Source: Andalucia godoyi And28 (taxonomy: Eukaryota > Protista > Jakobida). From it: a DNA stretch of 64,000 bases. The notes below the pieces were generated by a model, which did no database searches, was not told the origin of the DNA, and saw only the letters and a program-made list of their open reading frames with translations. Position 1 is the first letter of the stretch; every line of letters starts with the position of its first letter. This document shows positions 1-62,656 of the stretch, piece by piece. The position numbers and the translations under genes were made by a program. The DNA lies in the NCBI GenBank assembly GCA_009859145.1, contig VRVR01000052.1, forward strand, positions 159,943-223,942, written 5' to 3'.

Positions 1-6
1 GGAACC

Positions 7-2454: not shown

Positions 2455-2646
2455 CTAACAACGAGACGAAAAAAAAAAGATAACGAAAAAAGACGTTCGA
2501 GAGCCGCAATCAGAATGCAGTGTGGTCCCAGTTTCGATCTCAGTCCTCCAGCACCAAGAGAGAAGATCAAGGGGGGAGACAAAAAATAAAATAAAATGGT
2601 AAGAAAGAAAGACGAACGGCAGAATTGTTGCTTTACAAGGGTGCGC

Positions 2647-3774
2647 TTACTGCAAGGAGAAGGAGGAGGGTGCCCGTGCAGCAAGGTCAGAAATCAGAGT
2701 CAGTACGGAACGTGGCCAAAGCCATTCGGGACGCCGTGGCTGAGAAGACAGAACAGCTTCCGCCCAGGCATCCGGGATCCCAGAAAGCCCAACTCGAGCA
2801 CCGCACAAGCCAGCCACGATGGCTCCGTTCGTGTCCACATCGCCTCCAAGAAGCAGTGTGTCCGCAAGTGCTTTTTCAAAAGGCTGCTGCTTTGCAAGTT
2901 CCCGAATCGCAAGCGAAAAGGCAATCTTTACCCAGCCGATGTTCACCGTTGTCATTGGCATCGCATCTCTCGACGGATTCGACACATCGGATGCCGCATC
3001 AAACCACGCACAGACCTCCTTCGCTGCGTCCTCGGCATGCTGGAGGAGAGATGTCTTCGTTGAGGACAGCAGCAGCAGCGAACTAGCAGCAAGATAGGCA
3101 GATGAGAACCGCGTCGCCAACCAAGCTCGCGCAGCTTCAAATGCGTCCTTGACATCATTGCCACGGATCAAACGCGCAGCAATAATGACGTACATCCCCT
3201 CGCAAGCACATGCTCTGGGATTTGGGTGTGTCAGCAAAGAGTCGAGCACGCCAACAAGGGCCACATCGTCATCGGCAAGTCGGTGTCCCCAAACCGCGAT
3301 GGGTGTGGATCGCATGAGAGACCCGTTCCCTTGCGAGTCCATTGATGCGTTCTTATGCATGGTTCGTGGATTTCCTGCAGATCCGGAAAGCGCCTGTCTG
3401 GTCGTATTTCCAATGTCAAACGGCGGAGATCGGAACCATTCATGGTACCAGTGCGCAATGGATTCCACATATCGTACAGCACCGATGGCGTCGGCATCAC
3501 CTTGGGGCACTCTGGGATGCAGCAAGAGTCCTCGCGCGAGAGAAATCGCAAGCTCCGAGTCATCGGTGATCTGGCCACGACCTACGTGGAGCGCTCCCCC
3601 ACCAGGAAACGTAAGGGCATGCAAAACGTCCTTTTCTGTAATTCGTTTTCCAAAGAACTCCAATGGTGCTCCAGCAGCATCTCCAACACACGCAGCAAGA
3701 AAGCATCCTGCAGCGCGGTCCAACACCGGATCTGACCTTAGCGACTCTTTGAAACTTGAAAAGGACCTCTGCAT
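2647..3774 (-). CDS. ADP-ribosylglycohydrolase (ARH/DraG family)
   Basis: Motifs GDAAGAPLEF, GQITDDSELA, PFDIGNTT, GNGSLMR and GGDVDTNGAIVAGLCGA. First ATG is at 3774; the ORF track starts at a TTG. Confidence 0.92.
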   Translation of the reverse strand: MQRSFSSFKESLRSDPVLDRAAGCFLAACVGDAAGAPLEFFGKRITEKDVLHALTFPGGGALHVGRGQITDDSELAISLARGLLLHPRVPQGDADAIGAVRYVESIAHWYHEWFRSPPFDIGNTTRQALSGSAGNPRTMHKNASMDSQGNGSLMRSTPIAVWGHRLADDDVALVGVLDSLLTHPNPRACACEGMYVIIAARLIRGNDVKDAFEAARAWLATRFSSAYLAASSLLLLSSTKTSLLQHAEDAAKEVCAWFDAASDVSNPSRDAMPMTTVNIGWVKIAFSLAIRELAKQQPFEKALADTLLLGGDVDTNGAIVAGLCGARVGLSGIPDAWAEAVLSSQPRRPEWLWPRSVLTLISDLAARAPSSFSLQ

Positions 3775-4123
3775 CACTGTCGCCGATACCGCATCCCTTT
3801 TCCAATTCAATAAATCATACGAAGCAAAGGAAAGAATTGGAAAAAAAAAAGAATTGGGAAAAAAAATAAATTGAAGAAGGAAAAAGGAGAAATCGATACA
3901 GAGGAACAGAGAAGATGCTTGCAGACGGCCCTGTCAATGGTGATCCGTGAATGACAAGCGCTTCGTCCTACCCGCGGTGGACAACGGGACAAAAAGCTGG
4001 GCTGTGTGGTTTGCAGACATACCGATTATTGGGCACACAGGTAGACTGAGTGAGGAAGTGCCAGCAAGTAAGAAGGTACTTTACAAACGGAGGTGGAGGG
4101 AGGGGAGGAAATGAGGACGAAGG

Positions 4124-6601
4124 CTATAGAGCGAGCCGTGAGAACTCTTCTGGGCGAAGCAGAAAACAAGAGGTGAGGTTGGTGGCACAGCTGGCGCCAA
4201 GCGAGTCAGCGATTCTTGAGAAGAGCTGGACATCCGTGTTGGACGCCAAGTCTCCGCGCAAGTAGATCACAGCCGAGCACCTGCCTTCCGCGACCTCGCG
4301 CAGGATCTGGAAAATGCCACCTTTTGGACCTTCGCCGCACTGGACCACAATTTTTCCGTACTCGCACTGCAGAAAATCGGCGACAAATCCGTACGTGCCC
4401 TTCGTGGACAGCACGCACTGAACGGACCGCATCCATTCTGCATTTTCTGCGTCTCTCAGAAAATCAAGCAGTTCGTTTTTCCGGGTTCCAATGGCGATAA
4501 GCGCGAGCGACCGGTCAGCAGGCACGCCCAGCGGGACTCGTGACGCTCGATCCCCCACCATTCGATGTTGGAACTTCCGTCGTTTGTCCTCCAACAGCTG
4601 AGAAATCTCCGGCTTGGAAAGCATGCTTGCTGCATGGGAGCTGCCGCTTGCAAAGTGCGCAGCTGCAATGATAACGTCGGCAGGTGGCGCGCCGAATTGG
4701 ATGCAGAATCGTCGAGCCATGGCGATGGAAGTTGCAAACGCGGTGTGGCAAAGATCGGTGTATTTTCGCAGAGCATCCTGCGTAAGTTGGGATACTGTAG
4801 AGTTTGCATCGTTCAGATGGAGAACAAAGCACAATTTGTGGTCCACAAGATCCGATAAAATCTGTGCAATGCCTCCGAGATGTGGCAGGAGCTGCACGCA
4901 CGATTGCGGGACCAGCGAAGCAACCGCTGGTGGAAGATGTCGAAGCACAAAGGCACATGTCGATCTCGGCATCATAATGCGATAGTGAGGAAGAAGAAGA
5001 GGCAAGTATCTTTCAAGAAACAAAAGGAGCTCCGAGTCCACAGCTGCCTTATCACTGCCGCTGCTGCTTGCCATCGAGTTCGACGCGGAGGCTGTTGGAG
5101 ACTCGTATCCGAAGTACGGACTGCTCCCGACATTCGCATACTCGGAAGCAGTCTCTATTGCTGAAAACAACAACGCTATCTGCGGTCGCTTGTCCATCAC
5201 GGGCAACTGGTACTCTCTTGCACAGTATCTGGTAGTTTCCTGGGGTTGCTCGTACATCTCTTGTTGTTGTTGTTGTTGTTGTTGCTGTTGTTGTTGCTGT
5301 TGTTGTTGTTGTTGCTGCTGCTGCTGTTGGTGGATGTGGTGTGATTGGGTTTGGGGTTGGGGTTGTGGTTGTGGTGACTGGGTCTGATACTGCGATTGGA
5401 CGGGATGCGGTGCATACTCAAGGGTAGAAGGGGACGCCCTTGAATCCAAGATGGTCATGTCGTCTGGCACGGAAAGCAAAGGTGACAAAGTCTGCTGTGG
5501 CTGGGTCGATTTTTCATCCAATGTCGTCGCATAGCGGGAAAGATCAAATACATCTTCGTACGTACTCGGCTGCTGCTGTTGTTGTGGACGATGCTGCTGT
5601 TGATGCCATTGATCGAATATTGCACCGTGACCCACCGATCCTTGCAGAGGCGACGAAGACGGTGCCACGGGCGCCGCCGACGGACGTGCCTGGGTCATTT
5701 GCTGTTCTCGGAGCATTTGCAGCTGTGTCTGAATCGAGGAGGGGTCCATTGCCGAGGCCACGGGTGCATCAAAGTACAATGGCGCAGCAAGCGGAGGTAT
5801 GGCTGCAGGATTCCACTGCGCAGTCATCGCCATGAGCCTTACAACATCTGCTGCGGCCGCCGCGGACGACCCGGAACTCGCTGCCATATTCACGAGAGAC
5901 ACCGTGCGGTTCCACTCAAGGGGAAATCGCGGAATGGGAATCGGAGCATCGTCTTTCTGCCTTGATTTCCCCGACCGCTGCGTCTGAATGTTCAGCAAGG
6001 TCCGAGAAGGAACGGGAACAATGCACCGAGCCGCTGCAGCAAAGTGCCGAGAAGGAACAGCCATCATATTCACATATCGCGTCGGAGGTTTTGCAGGTTC
6101 TGTTTCCCGGACTCGGATCGAGCCAATCCACACACATCCGCGACCGTACGCATCCGTGCGCCCAAGCGAAAGCGGCCGCTCACACACAAGCTCAAACTCT
6201 GGAACCACCACCGCAGCTCGGCTACCCGCACCAGCACCAGCACCAGCACCAGCACCAGCACCAGCACCGGTATTCGCCCTGTCAGCGTTATCCGTGCCGA
6301 GCGCAACGGTCGTAGATGAACCTCGGGGATCGACCGCGGCGAGGGAAAAATCGAGGCTCGAGTAAATCAGGTCTTGCGGGAGATGGGAAAGCAGTGCTCC
6401 GCGTTCATCGCGAAGAGACACGCGAACAGGAAGCGCTGTAAACGACTCATAAAGAACACGCCCGCCTTTCCGCTCCACCCATTCCGTGGTGAATTCAACA
6501 TCGAGCGCGGTTTCCGTGTGCAGATAATACAGACGAGAGGGCTGGTTGACGGAGCTCGAAGACGAAGATGCACTGATCAGCGGCACATATGGATCATTCA
6601 T
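4124..6601 (-). CDS. PolyQ protein with a possible N-terminal beta-sandwich DNA-binding domain and a C-terminal methylglyoxal-synthase-like (MGS) domain
   Basis: C-terminus LALIAIGTRK...STKGT...GPKGG...SAVIYLR...DVQLFSRIADSLGASCATN follows the MGS pattern. Central Q/P-rich low complexity. The N-terminal domain assignment is inference only. Confidence 0.7.
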   Translation of the reverse strand: MNDPYVPLISASSSSSSVNQPSRLYYLHTETALDVEFTTEWVERKGGRVLYESFTALPVRVSLRDERGALLSHLPQDLIYSSLDFSLAAVDPRGSSTTVALGTDNADRANTGAGAGAGAGAGAGAGSRAAVVVPEFELVCERPLSLGRTDAYGRGCVWIGSIRVRETEPAKPPTRYVNMMAVPSRHFAAAARCIVPVPSRTLLNIQTQRSGKSRQKDDAPIPIPRFPLEWNRTVSLVNMAASSGSSAAAAADVVRLMAMTAQWNPAAIPPLAAPLYFDAPVASAMDPSSIQTQLQMLREQQMTQARPSAAPVAPSSSPLQGSVGHGAIFDQWHQQQHRPQQQQQPSTYEDVFDLSRYATTLDEKSTQPQQTLSPLLSVPDDMTILDSRASPSTLEYAPHPVQSQYQTQSPQPQPQPQTQSHHIHQQQQQQQQQQQQQQQQQQQQQQQEMYEQPQETTRYCAREYQLPVMDKRPQIALLFSAIETASEYANVGSSPYFGYESPTASASNSMASSSGSDKAAVDSELLLFLERYLPLLLPHYRIMMPRSTCAFVLRHLPPAVASLVPQSCVQLLPHLGGIAQILSDLVDHKLCFVLHLNDANSTVSQLTQDALRKYTDLCHTAFATSIAMARRFCIQFGAPPADVIIAAAHFASGSSHAASMLSKPEISQLLEDKRRKFQHRMVGDRASRVPLGVPADRSLALIAIGTRKNELLDFLRDAENAEWMRSVQCVLSTKGTYGFVADFLQCEYGKIVVQCGEGPKGGIFQILREVAEGRCSAVIYLRGDLASNTDVQLFSRIADSLGASCATNLTSCFLLRPEEFSRLAL

Positions 6602-6813
6602 GAATCATGACACTTTCATAATGAACAAACACCAAACAAACAAACGAACAAAACAACAGGGAAGCCGTGAAACGAGTACATCGAGTCGCCAGGACATAGA
6701 ACAATTGCAAAAAATATACTGGTGACGTGTCGCGGCGTTTTTGCCAAATCGAGCAGGATTGAGAGTGTTTGATGTGGAGTAGAGACGTAGCAGATATGCT
6801 CATGAACAGAACG

Positions 6814-6942
6814 TGCCGATTGAAACGTTGGGATCGATGTCTAATGGCCTACCCCCTCTTGTTGACTGGCAGCACACCCCCTCCCGTTTGAAGAACTGCG
6901 GGAAAACATCACTCTTCCCCCGCCAGGTTCAATTCTGGCGGG
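6814..6942 (+). mobile_element. Weak Fanzor 3-prime/omegaRNA relic
   Basis: TGC...GATCGATGTCTAATGGC (C...DRxxNG-like) runs into GGCCTACCCCCT (6846-6857), the motif seen after RuvC-III in other copies. Perfect 8-bp hairpin CCCGCCAG/CTGGCGGG at 6919-6942. Confidence 0.4.
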
Positions 6943-7123
6943 TGCGAAAGAACACTGACATTCCGTTGTTTCCTTCCGGCCGTTCAATTGTGAGTTCACA
7001 GATCCAGAGGTCGTGTCTCCGCTCTTCGTTTTTCGTTTTTTTCGTTTTTTCTTTTTTTCTTTTTCGTTCCTTCTCTTCTCCTTCTTTTTTATCCAAGGAA
7101 AGTTTCCAAATCACTAACCCAAG

Positions 7124-7576
7124 ATGGCCCGCACCAAGCAAACTGCCCGCAAGTCCATGGGAGGCAAGGCCCCCCGCAAGCACCTTCTCGCCACCAAGGC
7201 CGCCCGCAAGTCGGCGCCCGCTGGTGGTGGAGTGAAGAAGCCCCATCGTTTCCGCCCCGGTACGGTTGCGCTGCGTGAGATCCGCCGCTACCAGAAGTCG
7301 ACCGAGCTGCTGATCCGCAAGGCGCCGTTCCAGCGCCTCGTCCGTGAGATTGCCCAGCAGGCAGGCTCCGGCTCGTTCGGCGGACAGGGCGGAGACCTCC
7401 GCTTCCAGTCGGCCGCAATCGGCGCACTCCAGGAGGCCGCCGAGGCGTACCTCGTTGCGCTCTTCGAAGACACCAACCTGTGTGCAATCCACGCCCGCCG
7501 TGTCACCGTCATGCCCAAGGACATGCAGCTTGCACGCCGCATCCGTGGCGAGCGCGCAACCGCCACTGCCCAGTAA
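7124..7576 (+). CDS. H3: Histone H3 variant (H3.3-like AAIG motif, extended loop 1)
   Basis: [10 protein letters not shown] tail and a full histone fold ([36 protein letters not shown]). Confidence 0.97.
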
Positions 7577-31560: not shown

Positions 31561-31626
31561 GCGGTCGTAATAAAGAAAGAACGAGAAACCATCTCAATCT
31601 CTCCTGTATTCCGTTGATTGGGAATT

Positions 31627-31965
31627 AACCGCTCGCCAAAACATGAATCATTACAGATCATCGGCTACGCTGTCACCGATGGCAGATCCAAGTCTAAAGC
31701 GGTCATCGCTTCTTTCTTCGACGAGAGGAGATCAACCGGTTTCTTGGTGCTCGGTGTCTTCGGGCATGACCGGTTTGAGTTTGTCGGGGAGATCCCTCTC
31801 TGGAGCCATGGGATATTTTGTCTGTGATGAAAGACGCTGCTAGAGGGTTCGATTATATAAAACACAAACAGATAGTGAATAATTGAAAGAAGAAGAAAAT
31901 AGTGAAAGACTGAAGAAATTTCTGGACGTGACTATGGTAAGAAAATCGAATTGTTTGGATCAAAA
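31627..31965. repeat. Copy 2 of repeat R, abutting the Fanzor MITE right end
   Basis: AACCGCTCGCCA...CATGAATCATT and TTCTTGGT.CTCGGT.TCTTCGGGCATG...TGGAGCCATG...TTTTGTCTGT are shared with the 51 kb copy. Confidence 0.9.
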
Positions 31966-32497
31966 CGCCTACATTATACACTGAACATGCATATCTATGA
32001 ATAGACATGCATATTCAATCTTGCATCCCGTTGCCGCGAAGGGGATAGGCCCCAACACGCCTCACGGCGCTCTTCAGATAAATGTTCCGCGCTCCGCGCT
32101 CCGTTCCCAATCTCGATCAATCTGTGAGCCACTTTCTCAGCGTGACACGTTGCTCCTGAGAAGGGTGCATTTTTTGATTCTGACGGCCCTAGCAGCAGGC
32201 GTAGTGACACGTGGTCTCTTAGGAGGTCTGCGGGACCTAGGAGGCCCTGTATCGAGCGGTGCAGGCGTAGGCGAATGCGTCGTCCCAGCGCACTCATGCC
32301 CATATTTGAATTAAAAAAGTGACACCAAAAACCATACCAACGAATGATAGAATGGATGGCTATGGATGCTGCGTTAAAGAGTGTCCAAAATGCGAAGCCT
32401 GTGTCACCGGCTGAATTGTGGCCGAGCGTGCGTAAGCACGAATTAACGTGCTAGTGTCGGCCAGTATTTGACCGTGTCTGTTTAAACGGCCAACCGT
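31966..32497 (-). mobile_element. Non-autonomous Fanzor/TnpB-derived element (MITE-like), copy A
   Basis: Minus strand encodes PPKRPRVTTPAARAVRIK/MHPSQEQRVTLRKWL fused directly to IDRDW/NGAR/NIYLK (RuvC-III), with frameshifts. This is followed by GGGGCCTATCCCC...AATGTAGGCG. Left end ACGGTTGGCCGTT. Confidence 0.85.
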
Positions 32498-32630
32498 TGA
32501 ATTTCCCTGTTCTTCCGGTTTCCAAACTTTTTTCCTTTCCGTTTTTATTATTATTTTTTGCTTGTTCTTACTGCATCTCGAGCTTGTGTGTCTGAGTGCG
32601 TGCGTGCGTGCGTGTGTACAGAATTGAAGA

Positions 32631-41589: not shown

Positions 41590-42816
41590 TTACGTACCCA
41601 AGTTGACGACAAACTGCTTGTACTTGTCCAAGTTTCTCCGGAGCAAATCCTCGATTGGCCCGAGAACACGGTTGAATGCAGCACGGTCAAGCCTTGCGCA
41701 CCGGACGATATCCGAATCTGCAATGACTGTTGCGAGTCTCGGTTGATTGGTAAGCAGCGCAATTTCTCCAAAGAACTCCGAGCGACCGAGCCTGGTCACT
41801 TCGACGCCGCGTTTCCTGACCGAAACCTCTCCCTCAATCACAATGTAAAAGTCATCGCCAGACTCTCCCTCCCGCAACACCACGTCCCCGCGCTTGAACT
41901 CGACATCCGCCAAAGCATCGGCCACGGTCGCTCGTTCATACGACGTCAGCGTGGCCAAGATCGGCACATGCGCCAGCACGTCTTCGTACGACTGTCGCTT
42001 GGCCATCTGTGCACCAAGCAACACCGACCTGTACGTGTTTCTGTCGATTGCCCACAGCTTTGCGCCGTCTGTGGAAATCACGACCACGGACGCAGCACGT
42101 GGAGTGTTGTACATCAGCGCAAGCTCTCCAAACGAGCCGCCAGGCTTGATGTTCGCAACCGCCGTGCCGTCCTTGAGCGCATTGCACTCCCCGGACTCCA
42201 GCACGTAGAAGAAGTCTCCGTCGTCACCCTGCTGAATCAGCACGTCACCACATGCAGCATGCTTCTCCACCATCGCTGCATACACGCGCTGGCGGTCGTT
42301 CTCATCAAGCAGCTTGAACAGCGGATTCAGACGCAGAGCAAGCGACAATCTGTCCAGCGTTGCCTGGTCTTTCTTTGGCTGTGCATCCGCCGACTGCGAG
42401 CCCGAGCCAGCAGACGAGGACGAAGCACCGGAAGCACCCGCCGAGCCTGAGGGAGGCGCGCTGATCGGCTCTGCAGAAACCCCCATTCGACGAGCGGTCG
42501 CCATCGAGTATCTTCGACGAAGCATATCTGACGTCACTGCATCAATCGTGTGGTCATCATCGCCAGCATTGGTATCATTCGAAGCAGACGTCGAACCACC
42601 AGACGGAGCCGAAGCCAAAGCAGAAGCCGAAGTCGAGGAGGATGAGGAAGAAACTGTCAGAGGAGCCGACGACAGACGCTGTTGGAGGAGCGAGATGAGG
42701 AATGCCGGAATGTTCGATGGACGATGCTTGCACAACTCGACGAGAAGGTCCGTGATCAGCTCGGGGACTTGATGGTCATCGAGAAACGACTGGTATTCAG
42801 ACTCCAGAGACGCCAT
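41590..42816 (-). CDS. PKAR: cAMP-dependent protein kinase regulatory subunit
   Basis: N-terminal D/D domain, pseudosubstrate RRMGV, and two cNMP pockets (FGELALMYNTPRAAS, FGEIALLTNQPRLAT). Confidence 0.96.
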   Translation of the reverse strand: MASLESEYQSFLDDHQVPELITDLLVELCKHRPSNIPAFLISLLQQRLSSAPLTVSSSSSSTSASALASAPSGGSTSASNDTNAGDDDHTIDAVTSDMLRRRYSMATARRMGVSAEPISAPPSGSAGASGASSSSAGSGSQSADAQPKKDQATLDRLSLALRLNPLFKLLDENDRQRVYAAMVEKHAACGDVLIQQGDDGDFFYVLESGECNALKDGTAVANIKPGGSFGELALMYNTPRAASVVVISTDGAKLWAIDRNTYRSVLLGAQMAKRQSYEDVLAHVPILATLTSYERATVADALADVEFKRGDVVLREGESGDDFYIVIEGEVSVRKRGVEVTRLGRSEFFGEIALLTNQPRLATVIADSDIVRCARLDRAAFNRVLGPIEDLLRRNLDKYKQFVVNLGT

Positions 42817-43299
42817 ACTCGAAACAGCAGGAGAAATGACGAATGCAAAAAGAAGAAGGAAACAGAATTTAAATATATAAAATAAAAAAAGAAAAAGAAG
42901 AGAAGGAGAAAAGAAAAAAAAGAAATCAAAAAATGATGATGATGATAATAACAATAATAACAATAATAATAATAATAAGATGGTATGATAATATGTAATG
43001 ATAGAAGAATGGGAATAAATGATGAACGACGAAAATAAAAAGACTGGACCGAGAAAGAAAGAGAAGAGGATTGATATGAAGGAGGCGGAGGCGATGGAAG
43101 GATGGAGAGGGGAAACACTGCTGGGGCCTACTCGAACGACACAAGCGTCTGCTTAGCCTTTTCAGCGTTCTTTTTTACATACGGACCCAATTTCCTCCTC
43201 CTTGCTTTTGTTATGTTGCATCACGTTCAGTGAGTTGATGCTGCGTGAAAACTTCTTCTTGCGTGCAGACTTGCTTCTTTCGGGCAGTTCGCAGGTCTG

Positions 43300-47672: not shown

Positions 47673-48470
47673 TCAGTTCCCGGAGTTGGCATAGGGGACA
47701 TAATTGGCTCTGTTCTTGTCGTATTCTTCAAAGGACAATTTTGTCTTGGAGCTCTGGTATCTCTCGAGCTTGGTGTGCGAAAGAATTTCCTTTGAGACGG
47801 GCTCGCGGAGTCCTGCTTTGCGGTACAAGCTGTCCAAGCATTCCTCCTTCGTCCATCCCTGCTCCACACACACTTCTGGCAAGTACGTTGCCGAGTACGG
47901 TCTGCCGTTGATTGTGAAGGAGATGCGGATTCCATGCACCCCGATTGTCCAGTCAAACACATCCTTTGCAACTTCAAAGTTTGTCAAGAGAGAAACTGCA
48001 CATTGCAGCCGATTCAGGTCTGACTTCTTGATGGGATCAAACCGCCGATCTTCCGTTCCGCTGATCACTGCATACTCTGCAAGGCCCGTTCGCAGCGGAA
48101 CCTCGCTGAAGTTTCCAATGCATCCGCGCAAGTGGTACTCTCCATCCTTGGCCTTCTTGTTCCACGTCACAAACAGCGGGCTGCACATGACACCGACAAG
48201 GAGGGGAAAAAGGAAACAATCAAATCACAACCTCTCCAAAGCGTGAGTGAGTGAGTGAGTGAGTGTACGAGTCGGTAAAAAGGAATATGACATCCCGCGA
48301 ACCAAGACCGGCCGTCCAAGAAGTAGAAGAAGAACAACCACAACGGCATTGAAAAAACCAGTCAAGAAAGCATACTATTTGTCGTTGGATGGAAAAGAAG
48401 GACATTTTGTTCCAGCAAAGTAGGACTCCAGCGCCAAAAAGCAATGCGCTGCCATCAATTCCGTCGCCAT
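47673..48470 (-). CDS. AMMECR1: AMMECR1 family protein, spliced
   Basis: First exon MATELMAAHCFLAL; main exon PLFVTW...LRGCIG...DRRFDPI...VSLLTNFE...GVHGIRI...ATYLPEV..EQGW. Confidence 0.93.
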
Positions 48471-48527: not shown

Positions 48528-48832
48528 GTTTGTCACAACCCGCCCTGCACTACACAACCAAGCAAGCAAAATAGTTAATACACATGCCGAAACATCTTGA
48601 GAGCGCGGCTGATGGACAAGATTTGATCATGTTCGGGTATTTTCTTTCGAGTTCGAGTTCCGGACCTCGATAGAATCACGTGATGCAACGATCCCCCCCC
48701 TCCTTTTTTTTTGATGTGTCTGAAACTCCCCAATGGGCTTCCTTTTCGTTTTTCAGAGACGCTTTCACAATTGAACGGCGCCACAGCTGTTGTTGTTGGA
48801 GAAGCGGGGGAAAAAAAGAAAAAAAAGTAGAA

Positions 48833-49225
48833 ATGAGCTCGTCTACCAAGGATCCTTCGATCCGCGAGATTCTCGGGGCGTTCCTGACGAACTATTCGTC
48901 GTCCACACCGAAGAAACTGAAACTGATTGATGTGTTTTTGCTGTTTTGCGGTCTTCAGGCATTGGTGCAGGTTGCGTATGTTGCAGCAGTCGGAACCACA
49001 TTTCCATTTAATTCGTTTTTGAGCGGGTTCTTTGCTGCGCTCGGGGCATTCTTCTTTACAGTTTCGCTTAGAATTCAGGTGTCGGCAGAGTACGAACAGA
49101 CTTTGGGCAAGGCAGATGGGAAGTCGGACAGCTCTGTCGCTTCACCGTCTGCAGAAAGAGCTTCTGCAGATTGGTTTGTAGGGCTTCTGGTTCTGTTCCT
49201 GTGCGTTTGGAACTTTATGGGCTGA
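48833..49225 (+). CDS. DAD1: Oligosaccharyltransferase subunit DAD1/OST2
   Basis: TPKKLKLID, FPFNSFLSGF, SLRIQ and ERASAD. Confidence 0.93.
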   Translation: MSSSTKDPSIREILGAFLTNYSSSTPKKLKLIDVFLLFCGLQALVQVAYVAAVGTTFPFNSFLSGFFAALGAFFFTVSLRIQVSAEYEQTLGKADGKSDSSVASPSAERASADWFVGLLVLFLCVWNFMG

Positions 49226-49679: not shown

Positions 49680-51068
49680 ATGGCCACATCCGCTTCTCAG
49701 CTTGCGTTCGTGAACGACATATGCTCGATCTACACGCAGTCGTCAATGTCCAAGATTCTGCTCGACACGGTGATCGAATTGTTGTTTCACGGCGAGTCGA
49801 GTGTGATTGCAAATGTGAAGAACAATGTGCATCCCAGTGGACACGCCAGTACGATGGCGGACGCTTGGATGAACTTCATGACCAACGCGGATGTGCGCTT
49901 GCAGAAGCCACGTGAGATTGGATCGGCTGTGACGCAAGCTGCCCAGGACTGTGGTGCTAGCAGTGGCATGCTGAGACGGATTGAGGTAGCCGTGGGAAGG
50001 TTTCTAGACGCTGCGAAAAATACACAGCCAGTGAAGCGCTCTCGTTCGTCGGGCGGGGTCGGCATCCTGCTGACGGTCACCCCTGAGGAAGGTTTGGCTG
50101 TCAAGATTGCGTTCACGCATCTGTGTGACGTTGGCAAGACCGCGAAAAACGTTCCCGCTGCGACGCGGAACCAGATTTTGGAGTCGCTTTGCAAGAACGA
50201 GGATGCCGTCCTGCCAGACTTTTTGGACTGGAACGATGTGTCTGTGGAGTGTGTGGAGGACAGCGCGAAGCTCTCCGAGGAGCAAGATCATCCGCTGAGG
50301 TTCCAAACGTTCATTTTCCGGAGCAAGAGCCACGAGAATTCCGAAGTTTACAGGCTGCATCATATTAATTCGGGAGATGTCCAAGGCGCGGTGCATTTTG
50401 CGGTGGTTGTACCTCACTTGCTGCGACAATTCGAGCCATCACACGTCCTGGTTTCGGGCGTTTGTGCAGGGTACCCGGACAACAAGAATGAAATTGGATT
50501 TGGAACTGTTGTTGCCGCTACGGATGTCTTCAGTGTGACGCGAGGCAAGGCTACCCATTCGGAGATGCAGTTTGACATTCTGAAAATTTCATTGAATTCC
50601 ACTCCTGGTGCGAATCTCCAAGCACTGATTTCCAGCACGGTGAGTGTGTGGAATGCAAAGATTGCAGATCCGGTTTCTGGCTTGTCGGCGTTCATTGCTG
50701 ACTCCTCATCTTTCAAGAAAATGCTCGATTCTGGCATGGATGCGGCTAAGATCAAGGCCAATGCATTGACGGGTTCCATAGGATGTGCACTGGACTTTGT
50801 CAAGGAAGATCTCAAGACCAAGGAGGACTGGGATGCACTCCGCAAAGATACGGCTTCCAGAAAGTTGCGTGCGATCGAGATGGAAGGTGTTGGCATCGCC
50901 GAGGCCATCGCCGGTGCGAACAAGAAGCCAGTCGTGTTGTTCCAAAAGTCTGTGATGGATTTCGCTGGGCCGCGATCCGATGCTGCAAAACCGTATGCGT
51001 CATTCATTAGTGCATTATTTGCCACGCAGTTCCTGTTCTGCAGCGTCCTTCCCGAATTGTATCGTTGA
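49680..51068 (+). CDS. N-terminal helical domain plus PNP_UDP-fold nucleosidase (conflict-effector type)
   Basis: ILLTVTPEE, FEPSHVLVSGVCAG, GTVVAATDV, TGS, AIEMEGVG and KSVMDFAG...PYASFISA. Intronless. Confidence 0.85.
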   Translation: MATSASQLAFVNDICSIYTQSSMSKILLDTVIELLFHGESSVIANVKNNVHPSGHASTMADAWMNFMTNADVRLQKPREIGSAVTQAAQDCGASSGMLRRIEVAVGRFLDAAKNTQPVKRSRSSGGVGILLTVTPEEGLAVKIAFTHLCDVGKTAKNVPAATRNQILESLCKNEDAVLPDFLDWNDVSVECVEDSAKLSEEQDHPLRFQTFIFRSKSHENSEVYRLHHINSGDVQGAVHFAVVVPHLLRQFEPSHVLVSGVCAGYPDNKNEIGFGTVVAATDVFSVTRGKATHSEMQFDILKISLNSTPGANLQALISSTVSVWNAKIADPVSGLSAFIADSSSFKKMLDSGMDAAKIKANALTGSIGCALDFVKEDLKTKEDWDALRKDTASRKLRAIEMEGVGIAEAIAGANKKPVVLFQKSVMDFAGPRSDAAKPYASFISALFATQFLFCSVLPELYR

Positions 51069-51174
51069 AGTCCAGTGTATAAATCGGAAATCGTTTTCCA
51101 ATTGCGATTTTTTTCCTTTTCTTTTCGCGTCTGTTTTCCTATTTGTTTCAAATAAGCATTTGGATTCCGTCCGC

Positions 51175-51596
51175 AACCGCTCGCCAGTACATGAATCATT
51201 ACTGATCATCATCGGGACAGACCCAACCCACGTGTTTTTTTAAAAAATTAATTGGGGCGAGCACCAATTCTTTCAACGCAGATTGCTTTATATCAAAGGG
51301 TCGTCGTTTCCTCTTGCTCTCCGCTTCCAACGAGAGGGGATCAACGAGTTCTTGGTTCTCGGTATCTTCGGGCATGGCCGGTTTTGCGTTTGCTGGGAAG
51401 ATTCCTCTTTGGAGCCATGAGATGTTTTGTCTGTTTGAGGGGTCGATAGTAAAACACAACCAAACAGAAAAATAATACAAAGAAAAAGAAAGAAAAGAAT
51501 GAAGAAATGGAAACATCGCGCCCCATAGTGTTAGATAATTAAAGAAACTTCCGGTATGATGTTGCTTGTTGAATAGCCAATGGTAAGACACAGAAA
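51175..51596. repeat. Copy 3 of repeat R, abutting the Fanzor MITE right end
   Basis: Most complete copy; shares blocks with both 30129-30425 and 31627-31965. Confidence 0.9.
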
Positions 51597-52020
51597 CGCC
51601 TACATTATCCCCTGAACATGCATCTCGTTGCCGGGAACCGGATCGGCCCCAATACGCCTCACGGTGTTCTTCAGATAGATGTTCCGCGCTCTGTTCCAAT
51701 CTCGATCAATCTGTGAGCCTCTTTCTCAGCGTGGCACGTTGTTCCTGAGAAGGGTGCATTTTGATTCTGACGGCCCTAGCAGCAGGCGCTTTCGTGTCCT
51801 CAGTTGCAGCGCGATTGATGCACCTGGAGCTACGAGATCGTGTCTTGGAAGTTCGCCTCTTGGCAGTGCGCTGAACGAATGATAGATGGCTACGCGTAAG
51901 CACGAATTCCCTGTGAAGCAAAAAACGTGCTAGTGACTGCCAGTATTGACCGTGTCTGTTTATGTACACTCCCCCGTATGCATGACAATGCCGTGTTATT
52001 ATTATTCAACGGCCAACCGT
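51597..52020 (-). mobile_element. Non-autonomous Fanzor/TnpB-derived element (MITE-like), copy C
   Basis: KAPAARAVRIKMHPSQEQRATLRKRL fused to IDRDWNRARNIYLKN at the same junction as copy A (CTCACAG/ATTGATCGA); same left and right ends. Confidence 0.88.
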
Positions 52021-52242
52021 CTAGGCCGTCGGAGAGACAGGTTTTCCGAACTGTAGTCATTCCCCTCCTCTTCCCCCTTCCGAGCCTTTGATGCCTCTCT
52101 ATGCGGTGTTTTTATTTTGTGTTTTCGTTTTTGCGATATTTCTGAGAGAAAGACGATCCGAATTTTTTACGAAAAGAGGAGCTTGTTGTATTTTTTAATT
52201 TTCAGACGAGAAGAAGGGAATAGATTGGTCTCCTTTTTTGTC

Positions 52243-52605
52243 ATGCAGCAGTCTCAGTCCACAAACCCAGGAGCCACGGCGGTCTCTTCCGAGGAAGCAG
52301 AAATCCGCGCAAAGCTGTACCAGCGTTTGGAAGCGTCAGGCGATCTGTATCGACTGCGCCAGCTTGTCGAGGAGCGACTACAGGCGACGGGCTGGGAAGA
52401 TGAGCTCCGGAAGCGCTGCAAAGAAGCGATCCGGCAGAAGGGATTTGAGCACATCTCTCTCGATTCGCTTGTGGAGGATCTTACGCCAATGGCCCGAGCA
52501 ACGGTGCCGCAGCAAGTACGCATGGAAGTCATGGAGCGCATTCGACAACTCGTTGACTCTTCCACAATTCCAAATGCAGCTGCTCTTCCGAACGCCCAGT
52601 CTTGA
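52243..52605 (+). CDS. ENY2: SAGA/TREX-2 subunit ENY2/Sus1
   Basis: RLEASGD..RL..L..ERL..TGWEDEL...C...I...LVEDLTPMARATVPQQV. Confidence 0.9.
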   Translation: MQQSQSTNPGATAVSSEEAEIRAKLYQRLEASGDLYRLRQLVEERLQATGWEDELRKRCKEAIRQKGFEHISLDSLVEDLTPMARATVPQQVRMEVMERIRQLVDSSTIPNAAALPNAQS

Positions 52606-53049: not shown

Positions 53050-54120
53050 ATGGGCGCGAAAATTTGCTCTCACGACAAGGCATGTTCTGTGTCGCAGTCC
53101 GCTGCGAATCGAAAGCCGGCCGGTCGTCCGCCAAGCGCCGGATCCGATGAAACGCTACCACTCACACTATCTAGTCGGTCCACCGGAACCTCGATTGCAA
53201 CAGACCACGGCCCCATGTATTTGAGGATTGATAATCACCCCGCAGGTCCTGGAGACTTGCGACGAGATCAGAATCTTCTCGCTCCTCCTCCTCCTTTGCA
53301 TCATCATTTTTTCACTCATGGGTTCGACCCGACTAAACAAGGGAAGTATTCATGGAATTCCCAGCAATATCCAGTGCAAGGGTCGCGCAATCTGCCGGAT
53401 TCGCAGGATTCGTCAGTGTTTTCTGCGCTGCAAGACGTCCCTCTCGGTGTCCAGCTCTCAAGACGAGGGGGATTCGCACCCTCGCTGTTGGATATTTACG
53501 CCAATCATGCTTCTACCGCGGACTCTGTCGATCCGAGTCTGGAGCGGCCCGCGCGTCATGATTTCGAGGGTACAAGCACTGCCTCGGAAACACCCCTTCT
53601 GCGGCGGTCTGGCTGGAGTGCCCCAGCAATGCCCGACGAGACGGAGTTTCTGTCGCTCAACGCCGGTTGGAGACGCTCTGCATTCGCGTCTGCGCTTGGG
53701 AGCATACAAATTCCGGAAAAGGATGTTATTTTCCCCGTTGGTCACGGCCCTTCCCGCCGAAGCTCAAGGGAGTATGACATTGATCCGACCGAGCCAGCCC
53801 ATCTCTTCTCGATTTGCATTCGAAACCGATCCGTAGCCAGATTGGAAGTCAGCTTCATTTACATTTCCGATGAAAAACAGATTACAAAGTCGGAGGTCGT
53901 CGTTTCTGAGCTGACAAAAACATCTTTGGAAATTCTTTGCAGGAAGGTTTGTGAAGCAAGGTTTGACACTGGATTGGAATGCGTGTCGTTCGGCATTGCA
54001 GAGCATTTCCCGCAGCTCTCCTCTTCTGAAATGTTGAACATCGTGGTGGAGCCGGCACCGCAGAATCAAAGTTCATTTGTCATGAAGGCGTTTGTTTCTC
54101 CTCTTGATGGCCACACTTGA
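53050..54120 (+). CDS. Uncharacterised protein, 356 aa
   Basis: ATG-started ORF with a disordered N-terminus and a folded-looking C-terminal ~100 aa; no family recognised. Confidence 0.6.
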   Translation: MGAKICSHDKACSVSQSAANRKPAGRPPSAGSDETLPLTLSSRSTGTSIATDHGPMYLRIDNHPAGPGDLRRDQNLLAPPPPLHHHFFTHGFDPTKQGKYSWNSQQYPVQGSRNLPDSQDSSVFSALQDVPLGVQLSRRGGFAPSLLDIYANHASTADSVDPSLERPARHDFEGTSTASETPLLRRSGWSAPAMPDETEFLSLNAGWRRSAFASALGSIQIPEKDVIFPVGHGPSRRSSREYDIDPTEPAHLFSICIRNRSVARLEVSFIYISDEKQITKSEVVVSELTKTSLEILCRKVCEARFDTGLECVSFGIAEHFPQLSSSEMLNIVVEPAPQNQSSFVMKAFVSPLDGHT

Positions 54121-58685: not shown

Positions 58686-59986
58686 TTGAAATCGTCGATT
58701 TCCGAGGCATCCTGCGGAAGAGATGGGCTAGCAGCCTTCTTGGCTGGTTCGCCATCCATTTCCTCGCGAGCCATCCGCTTTTTTGTGTCGGACAGTGCAG
58801 CATCCGGAATACAGCTCTCGTAATTACCTCGGATTAGCAACATGTTGTTAACGGTTCGTGGAGGAAGTCGTCGGCGCCTGTCAGAGATACACTGTCCAGA
58901 GACCGAAAAGACTCGACTTCCACTATCTTACTCTTTTTTGATATTCCAGCAAGTCTCTTGTTGCTTTGTTGCTGCGATTGAAAAATTCAATGAGCTTCTT
59001 TGCTCTGTCGACGATGTGCTGCAAAATTGGGTTGTCAAATGCTCCCTGGACTGCCAGCTGCAGTGTGTGAATGAAGCAGCGAGAGTGTGGCAGTCCTGCG
59101 TTGACTATTGCATTCACCTGAACATCGGCATTGTCTGAAGTCACCGAAACAACTTGCTCCTTTGTAATACCGTATTCTGACAAACACTGATCCAGCGAAG
59201 TGGTCAGAACATCAGTCGATTCCGATGAGGACATGCATTTAAGCAGCAGCGAAACCATTCGAAGCTTTTCATCAATGAAGTGTCCGGTCGCGGCAACGTA
59301 ATGATGCCCACTCTTTGAGGGCCATCCATCAGTCGTGAGTGCCACTCCGAAAGCTCCAAGAAAGCGCGATTGAGTGGCCCCCTTGACTTGGGTCGCAAGG
59401 TGCGGAATCAATTTTTCTGTTAAAGTCTTTCGATCTGGAAATTTGAATTTGGGCTCCAGTTTCCTTACAAAATTCTGAAATCCCACGTCCTTGACGGGAG
59501 AAAGTGGTTGCAGGTCACGACAGACCAGAAATGCTAGGGCTTCGTTCAGTTCTCTTTGCCGAGTTGGGGGAAGTGGTTTCCAGATAGTATCGAGGTTTAA
59601 AGAACTTTCTGATTTCTGGTTCCCATCAAGAAAGTCGGAAACATGGCAATTTTCCAAATGATCTCGCAACTTCTCTGTGCTCGGCTTTGATAACGAATAC
59701 TTTCTTGGAGCTTCTTGTAAGCGGAATACACACAAAGCACAATGCACGTCGTCCATTTCTTTTCCACGAAAGACCAATTCCTCATCGCTTGACGGAGTTA
59801 CACCAAAAATCTCCACACAAACGACGCGCGGCCTGCAGTATCAACTGGGATCAACGGATACTTTGGGTGATAACGCACAACTGACAAGTCCCAGCTAAAC
59901 GCCTCCGCTCGTCGCTGTTCAGGGGAACGAGACTTACACAACTTACTCGCTTCAGCCTTGACTTCACAAATGGTCGGCTTTGACAT
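58682..59986 (-). pseudogene. hAT transposase pseudogene (BED finger, RNase H fold, dimerisation tail)
   Basis: VWRF (frameshift) CALC...HLENCH; LQPLSPVKDVGF; ALTTDGW; VTSDN; RCFIHTLQLAV; then a jump to RVFSVSG...RRRL.P..VNNMLL. The TRWNS region is missing. Confidence 0.9.
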
Positions 59987-60325: not shown

Positions 60326-62656
60326 ATGAACATGGAGTCGTTGTCACTGGTCGACAATGACGCGCCTTTATCTTTGGAAGATTTGTGGAAGTTGCGTTGC
60401 TGGGCAAGAGCAGGGTTCCAAGATGGACCGGCTTCTTCTACGTCTTTGTGTATTCCACTTCTGGATGCCAACATCATTGATGCCCTTCGAGAAGCTCGCG
60501 AAAAATGCGTGGCTTTAATTGCCGTTGCACGCAACGACGATTCCTTCAACAGGAAGATGTTGTACTCGGAGCAATGTGAAATTTTTCTGTGCGTGTGGAA
60601 CCTATTTTCCCGGGTGAAGCGAGATCACCGCCTTCACGTGCCCCCGCTTTTTCGTGGTCAAAAAGAGTTGGATAGTGTTATCCGCCGTGCTGTTGCAGAC
60701 TGCACCATGCGAGAGCTTGGCATTTCTGCGCAAAACAGCGGGCATTTGATATTAGGCGGCGTGGAAGGAGCTGGAAAAACAACGCTTCTCAAGGCATTTG
60801 CTATTGCATCTGCAGTGCTTTTTGATATTTTGTTGCCAGTTTATTGGAGCTATGAAACGACAACCTTATCATCTCGCGATGGAGGAAATGAGACGGGCAG
60901 CATGCAGGATTCATTATCTCCGTTGAAACAGACGCTGCCTTTGCCAGCGGAACTCGTTGAAGAGATGCTTCGACCTGCTGACCAGCACCAGACTTCTCAG
61001 TCAACCGAGGTTGTTCAAGTTGATCATAAGAACCTGTCTCCGAAGGAAGCTGTTCAACGGCTCAATGAGCGCGGATTTCGATTATTTTTGCTGGTTGACG
61101 AGTTTCAACGCATCTATGCCAGGGACGCGTTAATTAATCACAGAAGGTTATTGGCGTCTCAGATGTGTGAGATTGCAAGGTCTCCAAATACTTACTGCAT
61201 GCTTGCGGGCTCATCGGCGAATATGAGAAGATATGTTTTTCGATATCAAGGAGATGCAACTGATGAATGGCACGACTTTCCAAACTTTAACGGATCCCTT
61301 TACGTGTTTGTGGACGTTCCTGTTCTACGAACATTGGCTATTTTGAAAGAGTATGTTGTTACAAGGTATGGAAGCTGTTCATTTGCGGAAACTGATGACG
61401 ATATCTCGCAGCTACTGTTTCATACCGGTGGTGTTGGCCGTTGGATTCACGACGCATGGAAGCGGGGAGAAACACGTATTTTTCCGGACAGGCGCGCGAA
61501 GCCACTAGAAACTTTCCAGCAAGACAAGGACTTTCGTTCTTTGGTCGCTCTTCTGGTCAGTTTCAATGAAGACGCTATTAAGAAGCATCGAGGCTTAGAC
61601 ACTCTGCCCGCTATCGGAATAGAATATAATAGTGTGATTGCGATGCTTGGTCCTATTTGTGACAACATAGTGGGTCAACTTCGGAGGTGGGCTGATCAAG
61701 GACTGATCTATCTGGAGGCGGACGACAGTGGTCCCAAATCTGTCCAATTGTTGGTCCCGAGAGACTGCTATCTGTATGTGGGTGGAGAACGGGCTGTCGA
61801 GGATCTCTTACTTTTTGCCATGTGTTCGCTTATGATCTGCCAAGATTACGAAATTAATGCTGGGAAGCCTTTAGAAAAGCTCATACGGCCTAGAATTCAC
61901 GTGCATTTCCTGGTCCAACAAGTTGTCTACCGTCGTCGATCGCTGCGGTTTGTTCCAAACGCGGACGGGATAGCAGTGGCGCGTGTCAGTGCCGAACAGT
62001 CCGACCAGTGGGATGTTGCCGCGGATCTTGATTCTCTAAACCTTGAGCATCTGCGCTGGGAAGGAGAGACTGGATTAGACGGGATTGTTCTCGAGAAAAC
62101 TGTGAACACCCGGAAGAACGTTCCACAATGGCACATTCATGGATGGCAATGCAAAGGAGGAAGGGCGACATTGCAGATTGGCGGAGGAGCCATAGAGACG
62201 TACGAAAACCATTACAAGACGTATTCATCAGTGTGCTCAATCAAGGACGATATGCTTGGTGGAATACTCGCCAAGGCCGAGGTTGGGTTTCTGCGGCTGG
62301 CAGATAAGCTGCAGCAAGCGTTTCCGAAAGCTGAGTTTTTATGTCGGTCATTGACAATCACAACCACGAAAGATGGCCACTTGGCTCAAGCTGCTCTGAA
62401 TCGGATGAATGAAGTTTTCCCTCTTAATATTTCTCTTGCGAAGGTGGAAAGTCTGAAAGTCTCCCAATTGAAAAAAAACCAACCGGTTTCAGTGAGAATC
62501 TTGGATGGACTGCAATGGCTGAGTCCTTGCCTTCCCGAAAGCCTGCGGACCTACGCACAATCCGATGAATTTCTATTGTCCTCTCCTATTCATCGTATCA
62601 TTGGAACCTCGACATCTGCCGGGCCGAAGAACAAAGGGAAATGCTCTGTGCAGTGA
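60326..62656 (+). CDS. P-loop NTPase plus PD-(D/E)xK restriction-endonuclease-like domain (Crinkler/CR-effector-like core) with C-terminal CaaX
   Basis: Walker A GGVEGAGKT, Walker B LFLLVDEFQ, GLDGIV...GWQCK nuclease signature, and ending KNKGKCSVQ. Visibly more AT-rich than host genes; intronless. Confidence 0.8.
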   Translation: MNMESLSLVDNDAPLSLEDLWKLRCWARAGFQDGPASSTSLCIPLLDANIIDALREAREKCVALIAVARNDDSFNRKMLYSEQCEIFLCVWNLFSRVKRDHRLHVPPLFRGQKELDSVIRRAVADCTMRELGISAQNSGHLILGGVEGAGKTTLLKAFAIASAVLFDILLPVYWSYETTTLSSRDGGNETGSMQDSLSPLKQTLPLPAELVEEMLRPADQHQTSQSTEVVQVDHKNLSPKEAVQRLNERGFRLFLLVDEFQRIYARDALINHRRLLASQMCEIARSPNTYCMLAGSSANMRRYVFRYQGDATDEWHDFPNFNGSLYVFVDVPVLRTLAILKEYVVTRYGSCSFAETDDDISQLLFHTGGVGRWIHDAWKRGETRIFPDRRAKPLETFQQDKDFRSLVALLVSFNEDAIKKHRGLDTLPAIGIEYNSVIAMLGPICDNIVGQLRRWADQGLIYLEADDSGPKSVQLLVPRDCYLYVGGERAVEDLLLFAMCSLMICQDYEINAGKPLEKLIRPRIHVHFLVQQVVYRRRSLRFVPNADGIAVARVSAEQSDQWDVAADLDSLNLEHLRWEGETGLDGIVLEKTVNTRKNVPQWHIHGWQCKGGRATLQIGGGAIETYENHYKTYSSVCSIKDDMLGGILAKAEVGFLRLADKLQQAFPKAEFLCRSLTITTTKDGHLAQAALNRMNEVFPLNISLAKVESLKVSQLKKNQPVSVRILDGLQWLSPCLPESLRTYAQSDEFLLSSPIHRIIGTSTSAGPKNKGKCSVQ

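Follow-up and report, generated by a model that had tools for sequence, protein, structure and literature searches.

The gene considered here lies at positions 49680..51068, on the forward strand, of a 64,000-nucleotide stretch of contig VRVR01000052.1 from the jakobid Andalucia godoyi And28; this whole stretch is referred to as the window. The gene is a complete single-exon coding sequence of 462 amino acids (aa), starting with ATG at 49680 and ending with TGA at 51066-51068. Its product joins an orphan N-terminal region (the head) to a nucleosidase domain of the PNP/MTAN (purine nucleoside phosphorylase/methylthioadenosine nucleosidase) fold. The protein is read in this work, with a probability of about 55%, as a conflict-type PNP effector, probably an ATP nucleosidase, that occurs free-standing in a jakobid.

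The head spans residues 1-110 (49680..50009) and was predicted at low confidence to hold six helices in two AlphaFold2 (AF2) runs. A basic, serine-rich linker follows (residues 111-125; 50010..50054), where similarity to a Roc-fused paralog begins and where the predicted local distance difference test (pLDDT) score is below 50 at residues 118-121. The nucleosidase domain, which has the PNP/MTAN fold by AF2 and Foldseek and is of the defensive (Cap17/DtcC-like) type by profile comparisons, occupies residues 126-462 (50055..51065). Along it lie, all on the forward strand as are the preceding parts, E137 (50088..50090), the counterpart of Glu12 in E. coli MtnN; SGVCAG (residues 259-264; 50454..50471), a glycine-rich active-site loop; a helical insert absent from MTAN (residues ~305-360; 50592..50759), placed by AF2 and by profile alignment to MtnN; EMEG (residues 400-403; 50877..50888), the counterpart of the ribose-binding E172-M173-E174 of MtnN; and KSVMDFA (residues 423-429; 50946..50966), which includes the catalytic D427. 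The first-pass annotation of this DNA had reported the position of the open reading frame (ORF) and the signature SGVCAG, EMEG and KSVxDFA, and all of these are present in the sequence exactly.

An open frame of 462 codons has a chance expectation of ~3e-5 per 64-kb window. A log-odds score of codon usage was trained on 14 long ORFs elsewhere in the window, including several that match Pfam strongly. Per codon it gave 0.14 in residues 1-110 and 0.13 in residues 111-462, compared with a host-gene mean of 0.12 (standard deviation 0.06); off-frame sequence has a mean of -0.19, and off-frame readings of this ORF lie at -0.2 to -0.4. Codon usage and the GC content of third codon positions are both host-like. 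Because the score is coding-like along the full length, N-terminal part included, the entire ORF looks translated and native. Thus, the ORF is real, intact and native-looking, and residues 1-110 are real coding sequence forming an orphan region. An additional exon on the 5' side is unlikely, because the upstream gene DAD1 ends 455 bp away and the sole intervening ORF has a non-coding codon score of -0.12.

An exhaustive HMMER search of 1.84e9 (1.84 billion) representative sequences at E<=1e-3 returned 133 hits, among which the sole close relative is another Andalucia godoyi protein, ANDGO_01445. The best of the other 131 hits reaches about 30% identity across the matched stretches. The source was looked up for 21 of these 131 non-paralogous hits, and all were bacterial or metagenomic. 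At E<1e-10, the same representatives yielded no ortholog from another eukaryote. A word-indexed search of 5.8e9 proteins with the full protein returned the query only and missed the paralog, which is 72% identical, so its null results are weak for EukProt sequences. In viral data, the contig scan contained no relative, PHROGs gave no match, and the only match in the fold library was a pithovirus nucleoside phosphorylase of 231 aa, similar in size to MTAN, with no match for the head.

The final AF2 model was run with an alignment of 110 sequences; the single-sequence model has a mean pLDDT of only 34. With the alignment, the PNP core reaches a pLDDT of about 80-94, and the best Foldseek matches of the model are MTANs (E about 1e-11, template modelling score up to 0.73 on the target). 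The profile of the relatives, compared with the PDB, also found methylthioadenosine/S-adenosylhomocysteine (MTA/SAH) nucleosidases best (E about 1e-24); a phmmer search of the PDB with the lone sequence produced noise only (xylose reductase, E about 2). The domain is 337 aa long and has inserts at about 140-186 and about 305-360, in addition to the 110-aa head. Helices 310-329, 334-341 and 343-350 of the second insert have pLDDT values of 51-74.

The active-site positions are well preserved. Four columns, G260, M401, E402 and D427, are invariant across the 110 aligned relatives; R394, K423 (in 108 of 110) and D434 are near-invariant, position 432 is basic (K or R) in 110/110, and V261, C262 and G264 are strongly conserved. 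By profile alignment, E137 corresponds to Glu12 of MtnN, E400-M401-E402 to E172-M173-E174, K423 to R193 and D427 to Asp197. In MTAN, Glu12 is the residue that activates the attacking water. The E137 column holds Glu in 87 of the 110 relatives and also in DtcC, DDAN and NLRN. D427 aligns with D353 of DtcC, which is the catalytic Asp of that enzyme (D472 in Cap17), and the exchange D353A in DtcC abolishes Detocs defence (Rousset et al. 2023, bioRxiv 10.1101/2023.01.24.525353). Since the catalytic positions are kept and align with those of both MtnN and DtcC, the PNP domain is, as judged from these alignments, catalytically complete.

Family models separate the protein from housekeeping enzymes of the same fold. 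The NCBIfam MTAN equivalog NF004079, with a cut-off of 169 bits, gives it 22.7, and a small MTAN profile gives it only 12.2 bits. The PADLOC model PDC-M60C is matched at E 1.9e-12 and 44.8 bits, the best stretch covering only residues 392-452 (positions 336-398 of the 407 in the model), and the CBASS (cyclic oligonucleotide-based antiphage signalling system) 'PN-superfamily effector' model is matched at E 0.004. All 110 of the scanned relatives (110/110) match PDC-M60C and 107/110 match the CBASS model. Their best E-value against the MTAN equivalog is 2.9e-24, and an AMP-nucleosidase model gives a weak match in 7/110 of them and none to the window protein.

The remote relatives also carry modules of immune type. 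Fusions of PNP with AAA/NACHT and TPR (one from Actinoplanes), of PNP with NB-ARC and TPR, of NACHT with HEAT and PNP, and of PNP with ABC-3C CTD2 were observed, and a few relatives carry receiver (REC) domains, as DtcC does. A link to a sensor or immune module, which the window gene itself does not have, is thus seen in the remote relatives and, as a Roc fusion, in the paralog.

These results bear on the possibility that the gene serves housekeeping salvage. Its product might be an MTA/SAH nucleosidase, resemble an AMP nucleosidase or hydrolyse some other nucleoside, and the head would then be a regulatory region specific to the lineage. Among solved structures MTANs come closest, and the gene stands between housekeeping genes with host codon usage. 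The AMP nucleosidase of E. coli is likewise built from a PNP fold with a regulatory domain on its N-terminal side. A salvage role is nevertheless unlikely, given the 22.7 bits against an equivalog cut-off of 169, the 12 bits to the small MTAN profile and the failure of the AMP-nucleosidase model on the window protein, with its weak matches confined to 7/110 relatives. The lack of an ortholog in other eukaryotes at E<1e-10, the Roc-fused paralog and the NLR-type fusions of the remote relatives stand against it as well.

A direct comparison was made with characterised enzymes. The validated references were the three complete ATP-nucleosidase PNP domains of DtcC, DDAN and NLRN (Table S8 of Rousset et al. 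2023, bioRxiv 10.1101/2023.01.24.525353), and the housekeeping references were MtnN, DeoD and Amn of E. coli, taken from the K-12 genome. A profile was built from the remote relatives with both Andalucia sequences left out. Against it, DtcC scored 187.5 bits, the window protein 146.4, DDAN 129 and NLRN 99.5, and the housekeeping enzymes all scored below the three validated ones (MtnN 77.6, DeoD 31.9, Amn 16.1); this ranking is partly circular, because the profile members were picked by likeness to the window protein, and the reference enzymes are independent of that choice. The best neighbour-joining tree, made with 8 reference sequences and at low bootstrap, groups the window protein with DtcC and NLRN and leaves MTAN and Amn outside this group. 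A bootstrap figure of 299/300 from this analysis describes the three MTANs grouping together and was not used as evidence. Pairwise identity (19% to DtcC, 17.5% to MtnN) does not distinguish the two groups.

The partial circularity of the profile is one of several points that weigh against reading the gene as a conflict-type effector. The Pfam family PNP_UDP_1 (PF01048) gives 23.1 bits, below its gathering cut-off of 25.1. In the distance phylogeny, the split between the housekeeping references and the rest appears in 32-92 of 300 bootstraps only, the deep nodes being poorly supported because distances are saturated. Specificity for ATP is extrapolated from four enzymes that are 16-19% identical to the window protein. 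The gene has no sensor domain of its own and sits amid housekeeping neighbours. Finally, the first-pass annotation had postulated a partner sensor carrying a domain that matches the head, and none was found in the 1.84e9 representatives, the word-indexed set, the window, a STAND-like ORF within it or the paralog.

Taken with these points, the earlier claim that the domain is of the conflict type and differs from housekeeping MTAN/PNP is borne out by the equivalog and MTAN-profile scores, by the profile ranking of the validated enzymes and by the fused relatives. Sequence and profile evidence therefore supports placing the catalytic domain in the defensive (conflict-type) PNP branch. From this assignment and from the four characterised members, we infer that the domain may act as an ATP/dATP nucleosidase.

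In the best bacterial relatives, the PNP gene comes directly after a gene for a protein of 1600-1700 aa. On one JGI metagenome contig (3300028586; L006, positions 1-7293), a 408-aa PNP is followed by a 1616-aa protein without a Pfam domain and then by a 430-aa PNP, and the start of the gene for the latter overlaps the end of the giant gene, as in a tight operon. A second contig (L005, positions 902-7233) encodes a 1700-aa protein and then a PNP gene, also in a tight operon. As far as gene order and sequence go, both operons are consistent with the PADLOC candidate system PDC-M60. No PDC-M60 operon partners were found at the jakobid locus. Elsewhere, one 62-kb metagenomic contig of the European Nucleotide Archive encodes three different PNP-bearing NLR-like proteins (P0067, P0072 and P0079), whose architectures are NACHT-HEAT-PNP, PNP-NB-ARC-TPR and a 1741-aa protein with a C-terminal PNP; this contig is a local expansion of PNP-armed STAND proteins.

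The Andalucia paralog ANDGO_01445 (EukProt EP00762_P004915; P0002 in our set) has 1303 aa and is 72% identical over window residues 111-461, with the same inserts and catalytic residues in its PNP part. Its N-terminal 950 residues comprise a Kelch fragment and a Roc GTPase (Pfam 5e-9), and then come about 500 residues without a COR match in Pfam. The gene model begins inside the Kelch propeller, with only about 1.5 blades in residues 1-73, and the N-terminus of the paralog is probably incomplete or mis-modelled. Roc and COR are among the domain abbreviations for eukaryotic architectures in the legend of Fig. 4 of Rousset et al. 2023 (bioRxiv 10.1101/2023.01.24.525353), and so the Roc-PNP arrangement has a precedent. 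Similarity between the two Andalucia proteins starts abruptly at residue 111 (nucleotide 50010) in both BLASTP and tblastn. Roc is absent from the window gene, and a tblastn search of the whole window with the paralog found no remnant of it. The window gene is a genuinely free-standing copy of the effector module.

Such an abrupt boundary might also mean that the gene is a decaying or non-functional copy of only the 3' end of the Roc-PNP gene, with an arbitrary open extension on its 5' side. The orphan N-terminus and the dispersed repeat in the 3' flank would suit this origin. It is very unlikely all the same: 462 codons have stayed open, every catalytic residue has been kept despite 28% divergence, and residues 1-110, at a coding score of 0.14, resemble real genes and lie well away from the off-frame range.

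The pair also invites the suggestion that the short protein is a partner or regulator of ANDGO_01445, co-assembling with it through the PNP domains and either adding catalytic subunits upon activation or capping and inhibiting the effector domain of the sensor. PNP/MTAN enzymes are obligate oligomers, and their shared active sites are built across subunit interfaces. Identity between the two PNP domains is 72%, and everything in front of them differs; the search at E<1e-10 detected just these two genes of the type; and in the operon of one bacterial relative a PNP gene stands on either side of the gene for a giant protein. Neither Andalucia protein resembles a dead decoy, however, since both retain the full set of catalytic residues. 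The partnership is given a small though appreciable chance.

The head was examined separately. AF2 predicted helices at residues 4-20, 24-36, 41-49, 56-69, 77-90 and 95-114, with and without the alignment. Over residues 1-75 the pLDDT is only 39-54, too low for a fold to be assigned to the head; residues 81-110 reach about 80. The all-helical N-terminus of ~100 aa described earlier is therefore retained in so far as six helices recur in both runs, at a confidence that is low over residues 1-75. Fold searches with the whole model gave PNP matches only. A Pfam scan of residues 1-125 at E<=10 found no family, models for Death, CARD, PYD, DED and EAD included, with the proviso that HMMER filters can drop very weak matches. 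None of the 133 representative hits covers the N-terminal region, and the head has no homolog in the 1.84e9 representatives (E<=1e-3) or in the word-indexed 5.8e9 set (E<=10); these searches would miss weak paralogs scoring under about 40 bits. No second copy was found in any frame of the window, the N-terminus of the STAND-like ORF at 60326-62656 is unrelated, and the part of ANDGO_01445 that precedes its PNP domain shows no similarity to the head (Smith-Waterman against shuffled sequences, p 0.35-0.68).

The first-pass annotation had interpreted the head as a death-like or effector-associated (EAD) adaptor domain, through which a sensor with the same domain would activate the PNP enzyme by homotypic interaction. 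The size of ~110 residues and the six helices of the two AF2 runs fit a death-like bundle, a STAND-like P-loop ORF lies 9 kb away, and DDAN, a PNP effector from a sponge, carries a fused Death domain (bioRxiv 10.1101/2023.01.24.525353). Yet no Pfam family was matched at E<=10, no protein in either database shares the head, the head is unlike the non-PNP part of the paralog, the STAND-like ORF and the other frames of the window, and the pLDDT over residues 1-75 is 39-54. The adaptor interpretation of the head is accordingly not upheld by these searches, and we regard it as quite unlikely.

If the protein is a conflict-type effector, the activated enzyme would cleave the N-glycosidic bond of ATP and dATP and release adenine. 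The supply of energy and of deoxynucleoside triphosphates would thereby be drained, in a response of the abortive-infection or cell-suicide type. The protein would probably be held inactive until oligomerisation, because PNP-fold active sites span subunit interfaces and the isolated domains of the clade are toxic: the PNP domains of Cap17, DtcC, the fungal NLRN and the sponge DDAN are each toxic to E. coli and cleave both ATP and dATP (bioRxiv 10.1101/2023.01.24.525353). The lineage-specific helical head (residues 1-110) would be the likeliest control element, acting by autoinhibition, self-association or recruitment. A wider proposal combines the two Andalucia genes into a two-part ATP-depletion immune pathway. 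The Roc-PNP protein ANDGO_01445 would be its sensor, and the free PNP subunit would be recruited or released by PNP-PNP co-assembly or through the head as a new adaptor or regulatory domain; the whole would represent an independent eukaryotic domestication of the bacterial Cap17/DtcC effector. This pathway is put forward tentatively, as an improbable scheme that still carries some weight.

The surroundings of the PNP gene are ordinary eukaryotic housekeeping genes. AMMECR1 (47673-48188, minus strand) and DAD1 (48827-49225, plus strand) precede it, ENY2 (52240-52605, plus strand) follows, and a gene for a cyclic-nucleotide-binding (cNMP-binding) protein lies at 41590-42963 on the minus strand. 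The window is almost certainly nuclear DNA. It is compact and intron-poor, in agreement with the published A. godoyi genome (PMC7050145), and an Rfam scan of it found nothing.

On the 3' side, the PNP gene is adjoined by a non-coding dispersed repeat at 51150..52000, which lies outside the gene and is the likely source of the 'mobile relic' of the earlier description. A second copy is present at 31600-32520 in the same orientation; the copies are ~0.8 kb each and share 71% identity over ~500 bp, plus shorter stretches of at least 90%. The repeated flank thus exists, and the mobile character given to it is doubtful: tblastx between the copies shows stops and frame changes in every frame, no reading frame runs through consistently, and neither a Pfam or Rfam match nor a transposase signature was found in the 51150-52000 repeat. 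Possible identities for this repeat are a mobile element of the non-autonomous type and a conserved module between genes. A relic of the TnpB/Fanzor type had been suspected for the ORFs at 51706-51969 and 51199-51699 (minus strand) from the stretch 'KMHPSQEQRATLRK'; this candidate was rejected because Pfam gave no match, the codon scores are non-coding and the frames are broken between the repeat copies.

The gene had been proposed to be laterally acquired on the grounds that it is intronless and lies next to a mobile relic. Introns are missing from 88% of 864 curated A. godoyi genes (PMC7050145), so the single exon is no sign of transfer. The codon usage of the gene is host-like, and the neighbouring repeat is non-coding and says nothing on the origin of the PNP gene; the argument is weak in the form in which it was made. 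An old bacterial origin of the PNP module is plausible from the distribution of relatives, because all of the non-Andalucia relatives that were traced (21/131) are bacterial or metagenomic. After such an old acquisition, the present module probably would have arisen by duplication and domain shuffling between the window gene and the Roc-fused paralog.

Three further ORFs of the window were recorded. The 297-aa ORF at 58923-59816 (minus strand) has a weak match to DUF659 (E 7e-4, below the Pfam cut-off) and a coding score of 0.02; DUF659 is a family associated with hAT-type transposases, and the ORF may be a decayed transposase remnant, possibly the 'mobile relic' that was meant. The 776-aa ORF at 60326-62656 (plus strand), 9 kb from the PNP gene, contains the P-loop GVEGAGKTT and has weak matches to STAND-type NTPases (nSTAND_NTPase5 at E 5.5e-4; AAA_22 and AAA_16), no solid PADLOC match and a codon score of 0.06; on these matches it may be an NLR-like gene. 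The 356-aa ORF at 53050-54120 (plus strand) has no Pfam or PADLOC match and a low coding score of 0.05, and is a doubtful gene.

DtcC of Detocs and Cap17 of type III CBASS are bacterial immune ATP nucleosidases (Rousset et al. 2023, bioRxiv 10.1101/2023.01.24.525353). They share with the window protein the PNP fold, the catalytic Asp, the E-M-E motif and the helical insert absent from MTAN. Identity to DtcC is only about 19%, and the N-terminal parts differ: DtcC carries a receiver domain and Cap17 a TPALS/SLOG domain, whereas the head of the window protein is an orphan helical region. The window gene also differs from both in being located in a eukaryote without an operon partner. E. coli MtnN is the best structural match and has the equivalents of the catalytic residues in common (Glu12, Met173-Glu174, Asp197), but it is a single domain of 232 aa without inserts or head.

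Eukaryotic members of the defensive clade are NLRN of the fungus Hyaloscypha variabilis and DDAN of the sponge Amphimedon queenslandica, which are 16-18% identical to the window protein; the window lineage belongs to Discoba (jakobids), and its gene lacks a recognisable sensor or adaptor domain. Eukaryotic Cap17-like PNP fusions listed by Rousset et al. include Roc/COR, STING, Argonaute and gasdermin (bioRxiv 10.1101/2023.01.24.525353). The Roc fusion of ANDGO_01445 echoes the Roc/COR architecture of that Fig. 4 legend. In the paralog the PNP domain stands behind Roc and ~500 residues, and in the window gene only behind an unrelated head of 110 residues. Compared with ROCO (Roc-COR) proteins, the window gene has no Roc, and the paralog has Roc with no COR detected by Pfam.

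Eukaryotic Cap17-like PNP effectors are already known as a concept. What is new here is the jakobid lineage, the free-standing architecture with an orphan head, and the position of both proteins under the threshold of a Pfam-based survey. Because both Andalucia proteins score below the PF01048 threshold, such a survey (Rousset et al.) would miss them, and the pair thus exposes a blind spot of this way of detection. No report linking PNP effectors with jakobids or other Discoba was found among the papers searched. Since the concept has been published, the gain is incremental, unless the head proves to be a new regulatory or adaptor module.

The definition of immune-type ATP nucleosidases comes from bacteria, and among eukaryotes biochemistry has demonstrated them in one fungus and one sponge (bioRxiv 10.1101/2023.01.24.525353). 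A published suggestion holds that the domain passed from bacteria to eukaryotes, perhaps repeatedly. The jakobid pair, one Roc-fused and one free-standing, fits this idea and would widen the known eukaryotic spread of the effector. The free-standing copy would offer a small, tractable case of how a toxic enzyme is restrained without a fused sensor. A known family of immune effectors would thus be extended to a deep-branching eukaryote, with the kind of domain by which bacteria, fungi and sponges destroy ATP in the course of an infection.

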